Source of the DNA: Thalia democratica
Lineage: Eukaryota
DNA length: 64,000 bases
Assembly (NCBI GenBank): GCA_965202585.1
Contig: OZ241833.1
Location: 27,962,001-28,026,000 of the forward strand
Reading direction: 5' to 3'
Shown one piece after another: positions 29,820 to 35,612 of the stretch (its first letter is position 1; every line of letters starts with the position of its first letter). The notes beneath the pieces are model-generated. The model did not search any database, was not told the DNA's origin, and saw only the letters and a program-made list of their open reading frames with translations. Both the position numbers and the translations under genes were made by a program.

Positions 29820-31329
29820 ATCTAAGCGGTTCTTAAGCTGATAAACCATAGTTTAAATTAACTTTCATCTAAACTATTACTCGCCCGTTTAATTTAAGTA
29901 CAAATCCAATTTAGTTCGATCAGATGCAATCTGACAGTTTTTTAGCGTACATATATTTTAGATAAGTTTTATCTTCATTAAAAAAAATTTTTTTTAAAGC
30001 CCAAACATGGCAGCTAAAGTTTTGTATTAAATTCAACACAAAGGATTAGATGATTATAGTGAGCAAACACTATAGACCTTAATTTCAATCTTTGTTTTTA
30101 AAACAACGCTTTGTTTTTAAATGTTAAGTTAATTAAATTAGACAGTAGTTATAAAAAAAAACTTAAATTATTATTTTTTGTGATTATATGTTTTATTTGT
30201 ACTATTTAAGTACAACAATTGATCGTACGCTTTTTGGTGCTTAAAGCTGTAACTAGTTCTGTTTTATAAAAAGTTTTACCAGAATATATTCAGCCTATAT
30301 TGTGTTTTTGCCGTTTAAAACTTTGATTTGGAATTTCACAATACTTATAACCAATTTTAGCTGCATTACTACTACTTTTATACCAGTATACCACTAGTCT
30401 ATGAAAAAATTTAGAAACTGTTTTACCGAGAAAATTTAAATTTAGTTAATTTTGGTTATTTAGGCGCTTAAAAAATGCATTTTATGCTTAGTGAAACAAA
30501 AAAAATTTTTGTGTTAACAACGTTTGTGAAAGCTAAGTTTCTAATTCGAAAAAAAAAGATCTCAAGAATGTTCCGCACCGAGTAAACATAAGTTTCACTA
30601 CTTAATAATTTTAAAAGTGCTTATTCTTAAAATGTTATTTATCTGTTATTGTTATTTTTCTATTGTCACTTATAAATTCTGATGTACTCTCATTAAATGA
30701 GACACTCTCAAATTCGTGACTTGTTGTCGAATGACATTTAACTGTACGAGCTGTCCTGAGTTACTCAGAGCACTATACTTCATATAGTTTTAAATAATCC
30801 CTATATTTTTTACATGTTTAAATCATTAATAGTCATGCTTGATGTCCAACTTTAACTATAATAAGTAAATAAGTAGTACTGTAAATAAGTAGTACAATAC
30901 ATTGGTAAATTAACATATTAACTGATGTTGTTACAATTATAAAGAATTGAGTTTTTTTCGCGCCTGTATCAATTTTTGTTTAATTTAAAATTTCCGTTTA
31001 TTACTTTATTACTTTAGTTCTTTATTGTTTTTTTTCTATCAACAAAATAAATTCATGCATTAAACACATTAATAATTACTCGAACGGCCCAAAAAGGGTA
31101 TACTAAAAATTTCCACCTGCGTACAATTCCCACCCAAAGTAATTATTTATCTTTTTACTTATTCATTTTTATTTATTTTAATTTTTTGGTTCATTTATTT
31201 TTTATTTAATTTTTTACTATCAGTGTTACACTCCAACCTTTACCCTTGGTCGGTTAGCGGTTTTCGGAATTGATGGAGTGGGAATTGTGCGCGGGTTGGA
31301 ACTGAGCGGTTCCCTTAAAATATATAATA

Positions 31330-31880
31330 CACCATCAAATATTAAAGAAAGCCTTAAAGGCTCAGCAGCAAAGTACAACCAGCATTAAACAACTATAATT
31401 TTTAACTCAAACTTAACAGTCCAAATGACCAAGACAATTAAGGTAAAAAAGCAACAAAAACGATTAAGAATAATAGCTTGTTTTAGTCCACCTTGCTGCC
31501 AGTCAGTTAATACCAATATCGGTATAAGGTATTTAAGAACTCATAAACGCTTATCTACACAGGATCGAAAGTTAAACACAAGGGTAAAAGAAAACGTTTT
31601 CTAAGAATAAGAAAAGTGAATGAAATTTATTGAAAAAACTATTTTAAGGACACAGCTGTAAATGTTTTAATATCAAAAGCGATAGAGAAAGCAAAATACT
31701 TTGTGACTGTCGAATAAACAAATGCCACCTCAATAACAAATGCTAGGTCTAAAACGTCAAATGTAAAGTAACAATTAGCTCGGCAAACGACTAATAAGAA
31801 TATTTGAGTTAACAAGTTGAGTTTTAAAAAAGATTGTATAATCATAACGATGACTTCAAAACTATAAGTATGCAAATTTA
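31330..31880 (+). mobile_element. Highly degenerate Penelope-like element fragment (RT thumb-linker-GIY-YIG)
   Basis: Broken translations RIIACFSPPCCQSVNTNIG, CDCRINKCHLNNKC and KRLYNHNDDF match the PLE pattern WFNPP..V.TNIG / CNCR..CPL.GKC / FK.R.YNH. Confidence 0.6.
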
Positions 31881-31918
31881 ACGTTCTTTTGGTTATTTCA
31901 ATTCTAAACTCTTTAGCT

Positions 31919-32268
31919 CAGGGGTCGGCAAACTGCGGCCCGCGGGCCAAATGCGGCCCTTTAAGCCAAAACCTGCGGCCCGCGAGCTCCTTTTCAGCAA
32001 AAAATATACATTTTAAAAACAAAAAAAAAACAATATTTTTGTGATAAAAACTTACATTTAGGCTCTTAATTCAACAAATACTCATTATTAATGGTCTAAT
32101 ATTACTTAGTTTGTTATATTTTTGATCTTAAATAATATTCTCTACTGATTACTAGAATTTTTTAAGATAAATGCGGCCCTCAAAGGTTTTTTTTCTAAAT
32201 AGTGCGGCCCGCGAGCAAATTTTTCTAAGAAAAATGGCCCGCGAGTCACATAAGGCTGCCGACCCCTG
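31919..32268. mobile_element. hAT (Charlie/SPIN-like) MITE
   Basis: TIR CAGGGGTCGGCA; gcggcccgcg subterminal motifs; perfect 8-bp TSD ctttagct. Confidence 0.92.
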
Positions 32269-32516
32269 CTTTAGCTCTTAGTTCTTGTATCAAACTTGTA
32301 ACTTACTTGATTACTTAAAAGACATCCGAGCATACAGTAAGCTAGTAAAAATTACTATATTTTAATTTTTTTTCAGAAAATAACTTGTTTAAGCAATTTA
32401 AACAAGTAAAAGTATATTTATTTGATAAACTATTTGTAAAAAAATACACAAATATAAACGCGGTGTTGTTTTTATTTTTTCAGCTACACGCTTTACTTTT
32501 TCTTTCTGACTTTCCT

Positions 32517-33498
32517 CTACCGATTTTTCGTGATACATTTTATCTTTTTCGAATTGCACAGACAGTCCATGTTTGTGAAATACCCTTTTCCGTACCATAT
32601 GAAGAGCTGCTCGTCCGTTTTAATGGCTTGCTTGCTGACGACAAAGTTCCGCGGGCATATTCCCACCTCCACGTACAGGGTCCTGCAGTTCAGTTTATCC
32701 CCGCAATCGTGGTTGATGAACCTGGTGTGGTTGCCCATCGCGCCCGCGTCTATCTTCATGGTCGAGTAGGTGCAAAAGTTGTAGTTGAGGAGTCCTTTCT
32801 TTTTCATTTGTATCGACCGTTCGTCGCACTCTTCTTCCGTGATGAGCTCTCCAGTGTACTCTCCGATTACTGTGTCTGAAAATAACCGGTTTTTTTAGTC
32901 ACTGTAAATTTAAAAAACAAAATTTGAACTATAACATAAAAAAGGTTGTAAATTGGAAAAAATAATTAAAACATTCAAACTAACTAGCTGGTATTGCATG
33001 CCTGGCAAACAGTCCGTAACCCATTTTTTCGCCGAGTGGCTGCAAATAAAAATGATTTTCAGGATCGTCGAGACAGCTCAGATTGTACTTCTTCAACTCT
33101 TTCAAGGTGATACAGTTGTTCGCGTCACGGTTCGTGTTGTCCAACTGAGTGCCTCTTCTGACCACGAGGTGGTCCGTCCAAACGTGGTGCCTGTGCGGGT
33201 TGGATTTGTAGTAAGGAGCATAAATGCTGCCCGGCCCTCCCTCAAACCTCCTTTCAACCTCGAACTTTCCCTCGTTTGCAACTCTCAACCATTTTTCCAT
33301 TCTTGCTGGTTGCACGTTGGTGGTCCTGAGCGGAGCGAACTTTTTCAACTCGTGCCTGATCGGATTACTTTTTCTGGGGCTCTTTCTCCCTGTGCGCTTG
33401 TTGGAACTTTTTCTTGGTTGCTTAAGCGGACTTTTCCTTGCCGATTTCTTACGTTGCCGATTTCTTTTCTTCCTCGATACCACCTCGGACCAACTCAT
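32517..33498 (-). CDS. Stand-alone SET-domain (putative lysine methyltransferase) protein, 290 aa; exons 33498-32985 and 32875-32517
   Basis: Phase-1 GT(gttagt)-AG intron joins MGYGLFARHAIPA to NTVIGEYTGELITEEEC…IDAGAMGNHTRFINHDC…EQLFIWYG…CLCNSKKIKC; no stops or frameshifts. Confidence 0.92.
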
Positions 33499-33586
33499 TG
33501 TTTTGCTTCAACAACTATAACGGCTTCGATAAATTTTGAAGCGGCTTTTTGCTTCAATAAAAATTAAGGTTTAAGTTTGAACAGAG

Positions 33587-33594
33587 TTTATATA
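33587..33594 (-). promoter_or_regulatory. TATA box of the SET gene
   Basis: TATATAAA on the minus strand ~90 nt upstream of the ATG (context aaacaATGa). Confidence 0.55.
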
Positions 33595-34320
33595 CCCATT
33601 TCTTGAAAATTTTTACTACGTCATAGTAAACTTAACATTACTTAAATTTTGTAGAAAAAATAAACTTACCAAAAATATGCCTATATTAAAACAATTTTGT
33701 GGCGTTTAATTTCCTTTAATAAATTCTTCCATGTTTTGTTTAACTTTTATTTTTCAGATTTAAATTGTAGCTGAAGATCCTTTAAAGGGTGAAACTTAGT
33801 TTTACAAATAAAATTTGATTAAATAATGTTGTATATTTAAATTGATGTATATTGTATGTCATACACGTCATACGTATGTTTTGCCTTACTAATTATGCAA
33901 TTTGTACTAAAAAGCACCTAAAAAAGATAACAAAATAAGTTACCTAGAGTATTTTTTGCTGTTATAAATTTAAATGTTTTTAAATTATATCCCACAATAG
34001 GCCAGCAAAAGGAAATAGCAAAAAAAAAAATAAAAAATTTTCTAAGAAAGTCTGTGAGTAGAAAAGCCAAGGTTCTAGCACATTTAGTGCTTCAAACTAA
34101 ATTAAAAATATCCATCTATAACTTTAGCACAGTGGCTCACTTTAGCACGAAGGGTCACTTTCAAATTATGATGTCAGTCTATCAAACTAAACTATTATAA
34201 GATAAACATTTTAATTTATAGTTTCATAAAAAAATTCAAAAAGGTACCAACTGATCAAAAATCTATAAATAAATATTCTAACCGACAAATATTTTAAACA
34301 AGTTATCAATAATCACGTAG

Positions 34321-35612
34321 ATATGTATCAAAAGTGAGAGGGAAGGTCCATCTTCAATTTTTCAAAGGTGTTGTAAAAGCTCTTTTTTGAAATCACCCAG
34401 GTTCCGGTTGCCATGGAGATAGTTCCCGTCAAATACCTGCTCAAATGTTGGTTTGATAGTTTGTTTTGTAATAACTTTTTAAGTGCTTGTACAACTAGTA
34501 AGTTGATTTTTATTGTTTTAAGATTGCTGTTTATTAAAGTTTAGAAAACTCCATGTTGGTTTTCACTTATTTTTGCTAATGATAATTTAATTATTGAATA
34601 CAAACGATTAGCAACAGTACTCTCAATAGCCTCCAAACAACAACAATGAGCAAAATTGAAAAAATTTCAGAAACAAGTTTGTTTATTAATTGTTTTCGGA
34701 ATAAACTTGCACACATTTACTTAACTTTGATGTTTCGGTATTCCAGCGTTAAATTTAAATCTGTTTAGAACGAAAAATATTCTGAAGAAAATTTTAAACT
34801 TATAGTTGTTTAATCTTTAAAAACAGGTTAATTATACAAAGTTTTTGTGTATATATGCTAGGTAAAAAATTTTTAGCGTTTTTCTTTCGATATTCCAGCA
34901 TTAATTTGAGTTCTATTAAGCAAACAAAAATCTGAAAAAAGCTTTGATGTAGTAGGTATTTAATAGTGTACAATGTTTGAGATAACTTGGTGTCGCCGTT
35001 GTTTTAAATATAGAATAAACAGATTTTTTTTAATTAATCAAGCTTTTTTGAGGTGCATAAAAACTTCGTTTTTTGTTTTATTTTTAATTTTATCTGAATT
35101 TTCATTATAGAATGTTTGTTAAGTTATAGTAATAAGTAATAATTTCTAATATATAACATCAAACGTTTCTTAACTTTAATCATAAGCGAAATATTATTTT
35201 TTATTAGTCATTAAATTCTTAAATTTTGTTTTGACTTAGTTGCTATAAACTTTTTTTCACAAGTTTTTAATCAAGCTCTAACTTTGTCTGATAGTTGCTG
35301 AAAAAGTTAAATATATATAAGTTGCTGCTTTTATATCAATTTTAGTTATAGAATTAATCTAGCACTTAAATGTGTTGAAAAAAAGATACCCGTTTAAATA
35401 ATTGAAATAGTTAATTTTGTTAGTTTAACAGCTAAGTTTAAGTTTTTTTTTCAGGAAAGTATTTTTCTACGCTCAGCACGTAGTGCTTTCACTTCTCCGA
35501 CGATCCAACATATCCTGGTGCTATATTCATGTGAGGGAACTTCCCTTGTTCAAATTCATGTGAGGGAATTACCCTTTGTTGAAATTCATAAGAGGCAATT
35601 TTCCCTTTGATG
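34321..35612 (+). pseudogene. Decayed genomic duplicate of FCHo 3' end (copy of exon 19450 at 34321-34446; copy of last exon and 3' UTR from 35455)
   Basis: Exon copy has an internal deletion giving a premature TGA. Adjacent intron sequence is homologous. The four intervening muHD exons are not recognisable. Confidence 0.9.

Follow-up and report, generated by a model that had tools for sequence, protein, structure and literature searches.

How is a SET methyltransferase directed to chromatin when it consists of little more than its catalytic region? Enzymes of this kind are usually targeted by added reader or DNA-binding domains or by partner subunits. The question is raised by a gene for a protein of 290 amino acids on the minus strand of a 64,000-nucleotide stretch of Thalia democratica DNA (GenBank assembly GCA_965202585.1, contig OZ241833.1, positions 27,962,001 to 28,026,000), the whole of which is called the window here; we refer to the gene and its product as the C9 gene and the C9 protein. 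The initial annotation, made from the sequence, had described a minimal NSD-like SET protein with a tail resembling histone H1 or protamine. Our analysis suggests, with a probability that we put at about 55%, a minimal and predicted active SET/post-SET methyltransferase from an amplified, lineage-specific family, with an N-terminal tail acting as a mimic of the histone H3 tail.

The tail is rich in lysine, arginine and serine, as described before, and residues 17 to 53 contain 18 lysines and arginines. There are four RKS motifs (residues 21, 29, 38, and 42), two SPxK motifs (SPLK at residue 23 and SPRK at residue 40), and one ARKS motif at residue 20. The alignment with the H3 encoded in this genome (locus L038) runs colinearly over H3 residues 4 to 37, with matches at K4, A7-R8-K9-S10, K14, P16-R17, K23, R26-K27-S28, P30, and K36-K37, so that the major modifiable H3 lysines are all in place. 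Smith-Waterman comparison of the tail with H3 yields z values of 3.6 to 3.8 (p 0.001-0.003 against composition-preserving shuffles) at any gap penalty, and identity scoring yields a p value of 2e-4. Among ungapped registers, the one set by the LKKFAP motif, with LKK placed on V35-K36-K37, beats all others with 9 identities and 6 matched lysines. This register matches four of the four lysines of H3 residues 14 to 34 (p 1.6e-4, for a subwindow picked post hoc), and over all 34 H3 positions, with the register fixed, the p value is 0.018-0.036. The likeness is stronger in the paralogues described below, where 11 to 12 of the 34 H3 positions before K36 are identical without gaps (p<2e-4), and several of these tails begin at H3 residue 1.

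A Pfam search of the 290-residue protein found no H1 globular domain, and the tail has a mixed lysine, arginine, and serine composition with an H3-like lysine spacing, not the arginine-dominated composition of protamines. By its sequence, the tail is thus an H3-tail look-alike rather than an H1- or protamine-like arm. The H1/protamine label of the initial annotation is therefore dropped, whereas the histone mimicry that it had offered as a second option proved to be the better half of its proposal. The two SPxK motifs are real, and together with the charge they may still add DNA affinity and control by cyclin-dependent kinases (CDKs).

The catalytic region is a clear member of the SET family. 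The Pfam SET profile (PF00856) matches over its whole length (profile positions 1 to 105) with 76.8 bits against a cut-off of 22.4 (2e-21), and the cofactor and catalytic motifs are complete (G160-Y-G162, Y178, N226-H227, and Y266) and kept across the family. Both core motifs, EYTGELITEEEC and IDAGAMGNHTRFINH, are present in the SET domain. The SET domain is the only Pfam match above the cut-off, with no AWS, pre-SET, PHD, or PWWP domain, as had been noted from the sequence before; weak matches to Bles03, Phospholipase A2, and PRDM2_PR each remain below the cut-off. A post-SET cysteine motif, absent from the earlier reading, follows the SET domain, and the fourth zinc ligand is likely to be C229, which comes after the NH motif. 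The AlphaFold2 model, built with 74 aligned relatives, has a mean predicted local distance difference test score (pLDDT) of 85 and a predicted template modeling score (pTM) of 0.80; it is confident from about residue 40, and residues 1 to 35 are disordered. The model confirms the SET fold, with Z scores of 13 to 16 to many solved SET domains and a Foldseek E value of about 1e-11.

The assignment to a SET class is less sharp. By sequence, the SET core matches EZH2 (6e-12), NSD3 (1.7e-11), NSD2 (3e-11), EHMT2 (G9a; 4e-10), SETD2 (1e-9), and MLL (1e-8), with the matches to NSD3, NSD2, and NSD1 spanning 2e-11 to 2e-10, and on these scores it is roughly equidistant from EZH2, NSD, G9a, and SETD2. 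An exhaustive structural alignment gives SETD2 (Z 15.8), ATXR5 (15.6), NSD2 (15.3), Set2 (14.9), and EZH2 (14.8) scores that differ by about one Z unit at most. The top entries of Foldseek searches against the AFDB clusters and the ESM Atlas are mainly SET2, NSD2, ASHH1, and ASH1L, the first four ESM Atlas rows being SET2, NSD2, ASHH1, and AWS/SET clusters, and among named sequences that do not belong to the family, plant ASHH3/4 is the nearest. There is thus a weak lean towards the SET2/NSD/ASH1 class, although the protein is not a member of it, because AWS, the defining module of the class, is absent. The resemblance to NSD1 proposed earlier is real and weakly favoured by the fold, but it is not specific, since EZH2 and G9a are equally close by sequence. 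The C9 protein is thus best explained as a small stand-alone SET/post-SET lysine methyltransferase that is probably active. Its substrate is probably a histone H3 lysine, and the fold neighbours of the model lean to the H3K36-class enzymes.

Between the tail and the SET domain lies a region of about 100 residues (the N-flank) that is specific to the family. It has no Pfam match over residues 54 to 150, and an ESM Atlas feature search gave scores of 0.77-0.81, which is the chance level. The region contains just two cysteines and no cysteine cluster. Folded alone (residues 44 to 158, with 33 relatives), it reaches a pLDDT of 53 and a pTM of 0.28, whereas the full-length model has a pLDDT of 77-97 there, which suggests that the N-flank packs on the SET domain rather than forming an autonomous domain. 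It wraps the SET/post-SET region and would occupy the position taken by AWS or pre-SET in other enzymes.

The C9 gene belongs to a large, tandemly amplified family, a second feature missed by the earlier reading. In the whole 802-Mb assembly, we found 152 exon-level family matches, a lower bound, with about 50 exon-2 matches at E<1e-20, so the family has at least 50 copies. Arrays are found on C7 at 41.57-42.08 Mb, where they consist of partly identical 22-kb units, and at 9.4-9.6 Mb, and an array of about eight copies spaced about 10 kb apart is located on C5 (positions 14119493-14188714; 14.12-14.19 Mb). In most copies of the C5 array, exon 1 has one or two in-frame TGA codons and exon 2 is open; these copies may be decaying or using another first exon. 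Further copies are found on small contigs, and more divergent multi-exon relatives are found on C1, C2, and C6. The C9 gene carries the family motifs LKxFAP, YYxxN..HHVWTD, and DDPExHFY, and it shares its phase-1 intron after ..HAIPA with the 18 gene models made from the fetched loci.

A maximum-likelihood tree separates clade I, which includes the C9 gene and in which three subclades have H3-like tails, from clade II, in which the tails are acidic or unrelated. The tails of L028 (C7:41610400-41613400) and of the metatranscriptome protein P0008 consist of tandem repeats of about 8 to 9 residues of the ALNRPARQI type, and the tail of P0009 has repeats of the VRNQP type, showing a fast turnover of the tail. 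A further variation is seen in P0006, a clade II protein of 802 residues on a metatranscriptome contig of 2,487 nucleotides, which combines two complete modules of N-flank and SET domain in one protein.

In a set of 1.84 billion cluster representatives, the N-terminal region recurs in just some 30 proteins, the remainder of the 3,391 matches covering the SET core only. All 12 of the 12 family clusters looked up are unnamed proteins from marine metatranscriptome assemblies. By eye, P0008 is close to the L028 model and P0004 is close to L013-type copies, whereas P0002 and P0005 are not encoded here; since some relatives match this genome and others do not, the family is present in several related marine species. 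As far as the searched databases show, it is apparently restricted to one group of marine animals, in line with the lineage-specific origin proposed in the initial annotation. That annotation had left room for simple orthology to an established short SET family; no such orthologue was found, and the protein is not one. A literature search found no description of this SET family.

The gene is maintained by purifying selection, tail included. Compared with L001, a marine metatranscriptome cDNA contig of nearly identical sequence, it shows 10 synonymous and no nonsynonymous differences and one in-frame codon deletion. The comparison with P0002 (86% identity) gives a synonymous divergence (dS) of 0.90 and a ratio of nonsynonymous to synonymous divergence (dN/dS) of 0.11 overall, with values of 0.13 for the tail, 0.14 for the N-flank, and 0.08 for the SET part. 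P0002 matches this genome best at the two C9 copies, with 84-89% identity, and because no copy encodes P0002 itself, we regard it as the orthologue of a related species. The second intact C9 copy, L003 (C9:28080183-28081159), lies 85.6 kb away, with 98% protein identity and a dN/dS of 0.23. This copy is part of a segmental duplication with flanks that match window positions 31135-34814 at 86-94% identity, below the identity of the coding sequence (CDS).

Several observations weigh against the H3 mimic. Taken alone in the fixed ungapped register, the C9 copy has 7 of 34 identities (p 0.036), which is a moderate likeness, and its tail is internally repetitive through the RKS units and rich in lysine and arginine, so that a likeness to any basic tail could more easily arise by chance. 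The orthologue P0002 lacks the first ARKS, its protein beginning at the position of residue 21. The acidic or unrelated tails of clade II and the unrelated repeats of some clade I tails imply that the mimic is dispensable for the catalytic module of the family, and in comparisons between paralogues the tail has a dN/dS of 0.5-0.7 against 0.13-0.29 for the SET part. Finally, the lysines of LKKFAP are probably structural and not pseudosubstrates, because in structural superposition this motif falls on the flanks N-terminal to the core in other SET enzymes. We had considered K52 as a pseudosubstrate in the active site, but the structural alignments to other SET enzymes start at model residues 43 to 48, suggesting that LKKFAP belongs to the N-terminal flank instead. 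A co-fold of the tail (residues 1 to 45) with the core (residues 46 to 289) and S-adenosylmethionine gave a score of 0.03 and a mark of 0.34, favouring binding neither way.

If the tail is an H3 mimic, it could be methylated or phosphorylated by its own enzyme or by the writers of the H3 tail in the cell, with K9/K27 methyltransferases, mitotic kinases at the RKS motifs, and CDKs at the SPxK motifs as candidates. The tail might further be bound by H3-tail readers or compete with nucleosomal H3 for the active site. Any one of these interactions would control or position an enzyme lacking its own reader domain, and the positive charge would add an unspecific affinity to DNA or nucleosomes and, probably, nuclear import. 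A bolder version, which we consider unlikely in its full extent, concerns the origin of the family: a full H3 tail, from residue 1 to K36-K37, would have been placed on a minimal SET module as a chimera or as an exact convergent copy, giving a "portable H3 tail" open to the same writing and reading as the nucleosomal one. The activity or location of the enzymes would thereby be tied to the histone code nearby, with no need for a reader domain. Amplification and tail diversification into H3-like, repeat, and acidic forms would then serve lineage-specific chromatin regulation or genetic conflict, and the C9 copy would be a conserved version rich in K9/K27 contexts.

The alternative that survives best, although we regard it as improbable, is that the tail is a basic low-complexity nuclear localization signal (NLS) or linker, with an H3 likeness arising from composition and RKS repeats. 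The protein would then be an ordinary SET enzyme, possibly with nonhistone substrates. The stretch SRKKRNRQRKK is like a classical NLS, the tail is predicted to be disordered and evolves fast between paralogues, and the significance of the fixed register for the C9 copy is just p 0.018-0.036. Composition, however, does not easily account for the scores, as shuffles seldom reach that of the tail (p 0.001-0.003, or 2e-4 with identity scoring) and the four lysines of H3 residues 14 to 34 all fall in register, with the caveat on the post hoc choice of this subwindow given above. The H3-like tails in three clade I subclades, with up to 12 of 34 ungapped identities, and the low dN/dS of the tail across species (0.13) also argue against a mere linker.

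The reading of the initial annotation, in which the tail is an H1- or protamine-like arm binding the minor groove through SPKK-type motifs under CDK control, targeting the enzyme to AT-rich DNA and perhaps acting in germline or sperm chromatin, appears more doubtful still. It would fit with the two SPxK motifs and the 18 basic residues of the tail, with the very AT-rich DNA around the gene (24-30% GC), and with the tandem amplification that is frequent in germline-expressed chromatin genes. However, besides the missing H1 globular domain, the alignment of the tail with H3 residues 4 to 37 runs from end to end and scores above the level of shuffles, those of the paralogues even more strongly, and because the tails of the family range from basic to acidic, generic DNA binding cannot be the mode of action of the whole family.

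Least probable, with a slim chance, is a genetic-conflict or decoy system, in which free H3 tails titrate or misdirect the histone-tail machinery of the cell or of a parasite and the arrays are the mark of an arms race involving drive or defence against transposons or viruses: near-identical copies at periods of about 22 kb and 10 kb, many of them broken, the fast tail diversification on a conserved core, and the apparent restriction to one lineage would suit it, but the C9 gene lies in a two-copy segmental duplication and not in an array, is under strong purifying selection including its tail, and no link to a mobile element or virus was seen.

Histone mimicry within methyltransferases has precedents in the ARKT automethylation of G9a (PMC2175347), the EZH2 automethylation loop of PRC2 (PMC6771386, PMC6771381), and the H3K9-like motifs of SETDB1 (bioRxiv 10.1101/2025.01.21.634156, 10.1101/2025.10.22.683908). 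In these systems, the automethylated motif recruits chromodomain proteins or lifts autoinhibition (PMC2175347; PMC6771386; PMC6771381; bioRxiv 10.1101/2025.01.21.634156; 10.1101/2025.10.22.683908), and their regulation by such motifs is a recent theme. Like them, the C9 protein has an H3-like ARKS/RKS motif in a disordered region of the methyltransferase itself. The known examples are, however, single short motifs on large multidomain enzymes, whereas about 37 residues of the minimal C9 protein follow H3 from K4 to K37. Unlike the motifs of G9a, SETDB1, and PRC2, the H3-like tail recurs across an amplified family. A whole family of minimal enzymes thus has a near-complete H3-like tail where a reader domain would be, suggesting a known type of regulation that goes unusually far here and is combined with an unusual minimal architecture. 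If the tail is written and read like H3, these proteins would represent a compact, naturally occurring "writer with a built-in substrate/reader handle", useful for studying mimicry in methyltransferases. They would also illustrate how gene amplification in a marine animal can bring about a chromatin innovation peculiar to its lineage. Should the tail serve only as an NLS or a DNA anchor, the family would be an ordinary lineage-specific SET expansion.

The SET2/NSD/ASH1 class (SETD2, NSD1 to NSD3, and ASHH1, ASHH3, and ASHH4) shares the SET and post-SET core with the C9 protein and provides its best or tied-best structural neighbours. Members of this class have an AWS zinc cluster and PWWP, PHD, SRI, or CW domains, with PWWP and PHD readers in the NSD subfamily, whereas the C9 protein has a cysteine-poor N-flank and, by Pfam, the SET domain only. 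Also among the closest systems are the KQTARK-tailed paralogues in the 22-kb arrays, with the same family motifs, phase-1 intron, and an H3-like tail; the C9 gene differs from them in forming a separate two-copy subclade, in a 16-residue N-terminal extension, and in having ARKS and RKS-x-P motifs instead of KQTARK. Chlorella-virus vSET is also small and free of reader domains, and it lacks both an N-flank and a post-SET motif; it was absent among the matches in the searches made here. ATXR5 is a tied top fold match, but it has a PHD finger and reads A31 of H3.1. Neither vSET nor ATXR5 carries a histone-like tail, unlike the C9 protein.

The gene itself is intact and expressed; it has a TATA promoter of its own, and its polyadenylated transcript is spliced at a single intron. 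Its ATG lies at position 33498, and the features are listed in Table 1. A protein search with exon 1 led to P0001 (289 residues, 99% identical), which is encoded by the contig L001. This polyadenylated cDNA of 1,059 nucleotides matches positions 33572-32985 and 32875-32455 at 97-98% identity, with a junction at the predicted splice, and its poly(A) run begins 16 nucleotides past the AATAAA signal. L001 opens with ACATGGG, which has no genomic counterpart and looks like a remnant of a cDNA-synthesis adaptor, and the cap site is therefore probably not far from the 5' end near 33572. A spliced poly(A) cDNA with its own untranslated regions (UTRs) indicates a transcribed stand-alone unit of about 1.05 kb rather than a piece of a larger gene. 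Both the intact 290-codon gene with a TATA box and its independence from a larger, multidomain gene, which the initial annotation had left to be checked, are thereby borne out, the cDNA covering genomic positions 33572-32455 minus the intron with no extra exons. Expression, also left to be checked there, is seen in a sequencing-run index, where RNA for this stretch is present in marine metatranscriptomes (whole-plankton RNA) from several studies.

Table 1. Coordinates of the C9 gene, its transcript, and the regions of its protein in the window
Feature	Position	Strand	Basis
TATA box TATATAAA	33587..33594	minus	cDNA begins about 22 nt further downstream
5' UTR, 74 nt	33499..33572	minus	blastn of cDNA contig L001 against the window
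Exon 1 coding part, residues 1-171 and first base of codon 172	32985..33498	minus	Open reading frame and cDNA
H3-tail look-alike, residues 17-53, aligned to H3 4-37	33340..33450	minus	Alignment with the genome's own H3
Family-specific N-flank, residues 54-150	33049..33339	minus	Motifs FAPL, YYKSNP..HHVWTDHLV, DDPENHFYL
SET domain, residues 160-267, split by the intron	32589..33021	minus	Pfam PF00856, motifs, fold matches
Intron, 109 nt, GT..AG, phase 1, 21% GC	32876..32984	minus	cDNA; position kept in paralogues
Exon 2 coding part, from the second base of codon 172 through residue 290, and stop at 32517-32519	32517..32875	minus	
Post-SET cysteine motif C276-L-C278-x6-C285	32535..32564	minus	Sequence motif; CxCx4C in most relatives
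3' UTR, 62 nt, AATAAA at 32476-32471, poly(A) site at about 32455	32455..32516	minus	cDNA

The CDS of 873 nucleotides has a GC content of 48% and a third-position GC content (GC3) of 63%, the highest among the family members measured, and is surrounded by DNA of 24-30% GC. Such a composition in DNA of 25% GC raised the question of a horizontal or viral origin, which we rejected as unsupported, because the AT-rich spliceosomal intron is common to the paralogues, other genes here have a GC3 of 35-54%, and the family is spread over several chromosomes.

Downstream of the gene, in AT-rich DNA, window positions 31933-32250 contain three plus-strand copies of a GC-rich GTGCGGCCCGCGAGC-like motif, for which none would be expected by chance; this cluster may be part of a small repeat element. 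Histone-fold genes are themselves present in very many copies, regularly repeated in tandem every 7-10 kb, for example, at C10:25.64-25.96, C7:14.67-14.91, C8:46.19-46.31, and C8:54.37-54.45 Mb; all of the 150 scored among the 960 candidates match, and six translated loci all encode H3. Other histone-fold matches lie around C8:39.62-39.65 Mb, where the one translated locus, L032 (C8:39616067-39619441), encodes an H3 variant with ARTKQAAKKS instead of ARTKQTARKS and an altered C-terminus. The neighbouring open reading frame in the window is atlastin-like, with about 38-40% identity to mollusc and vertebrate atlastins alike.

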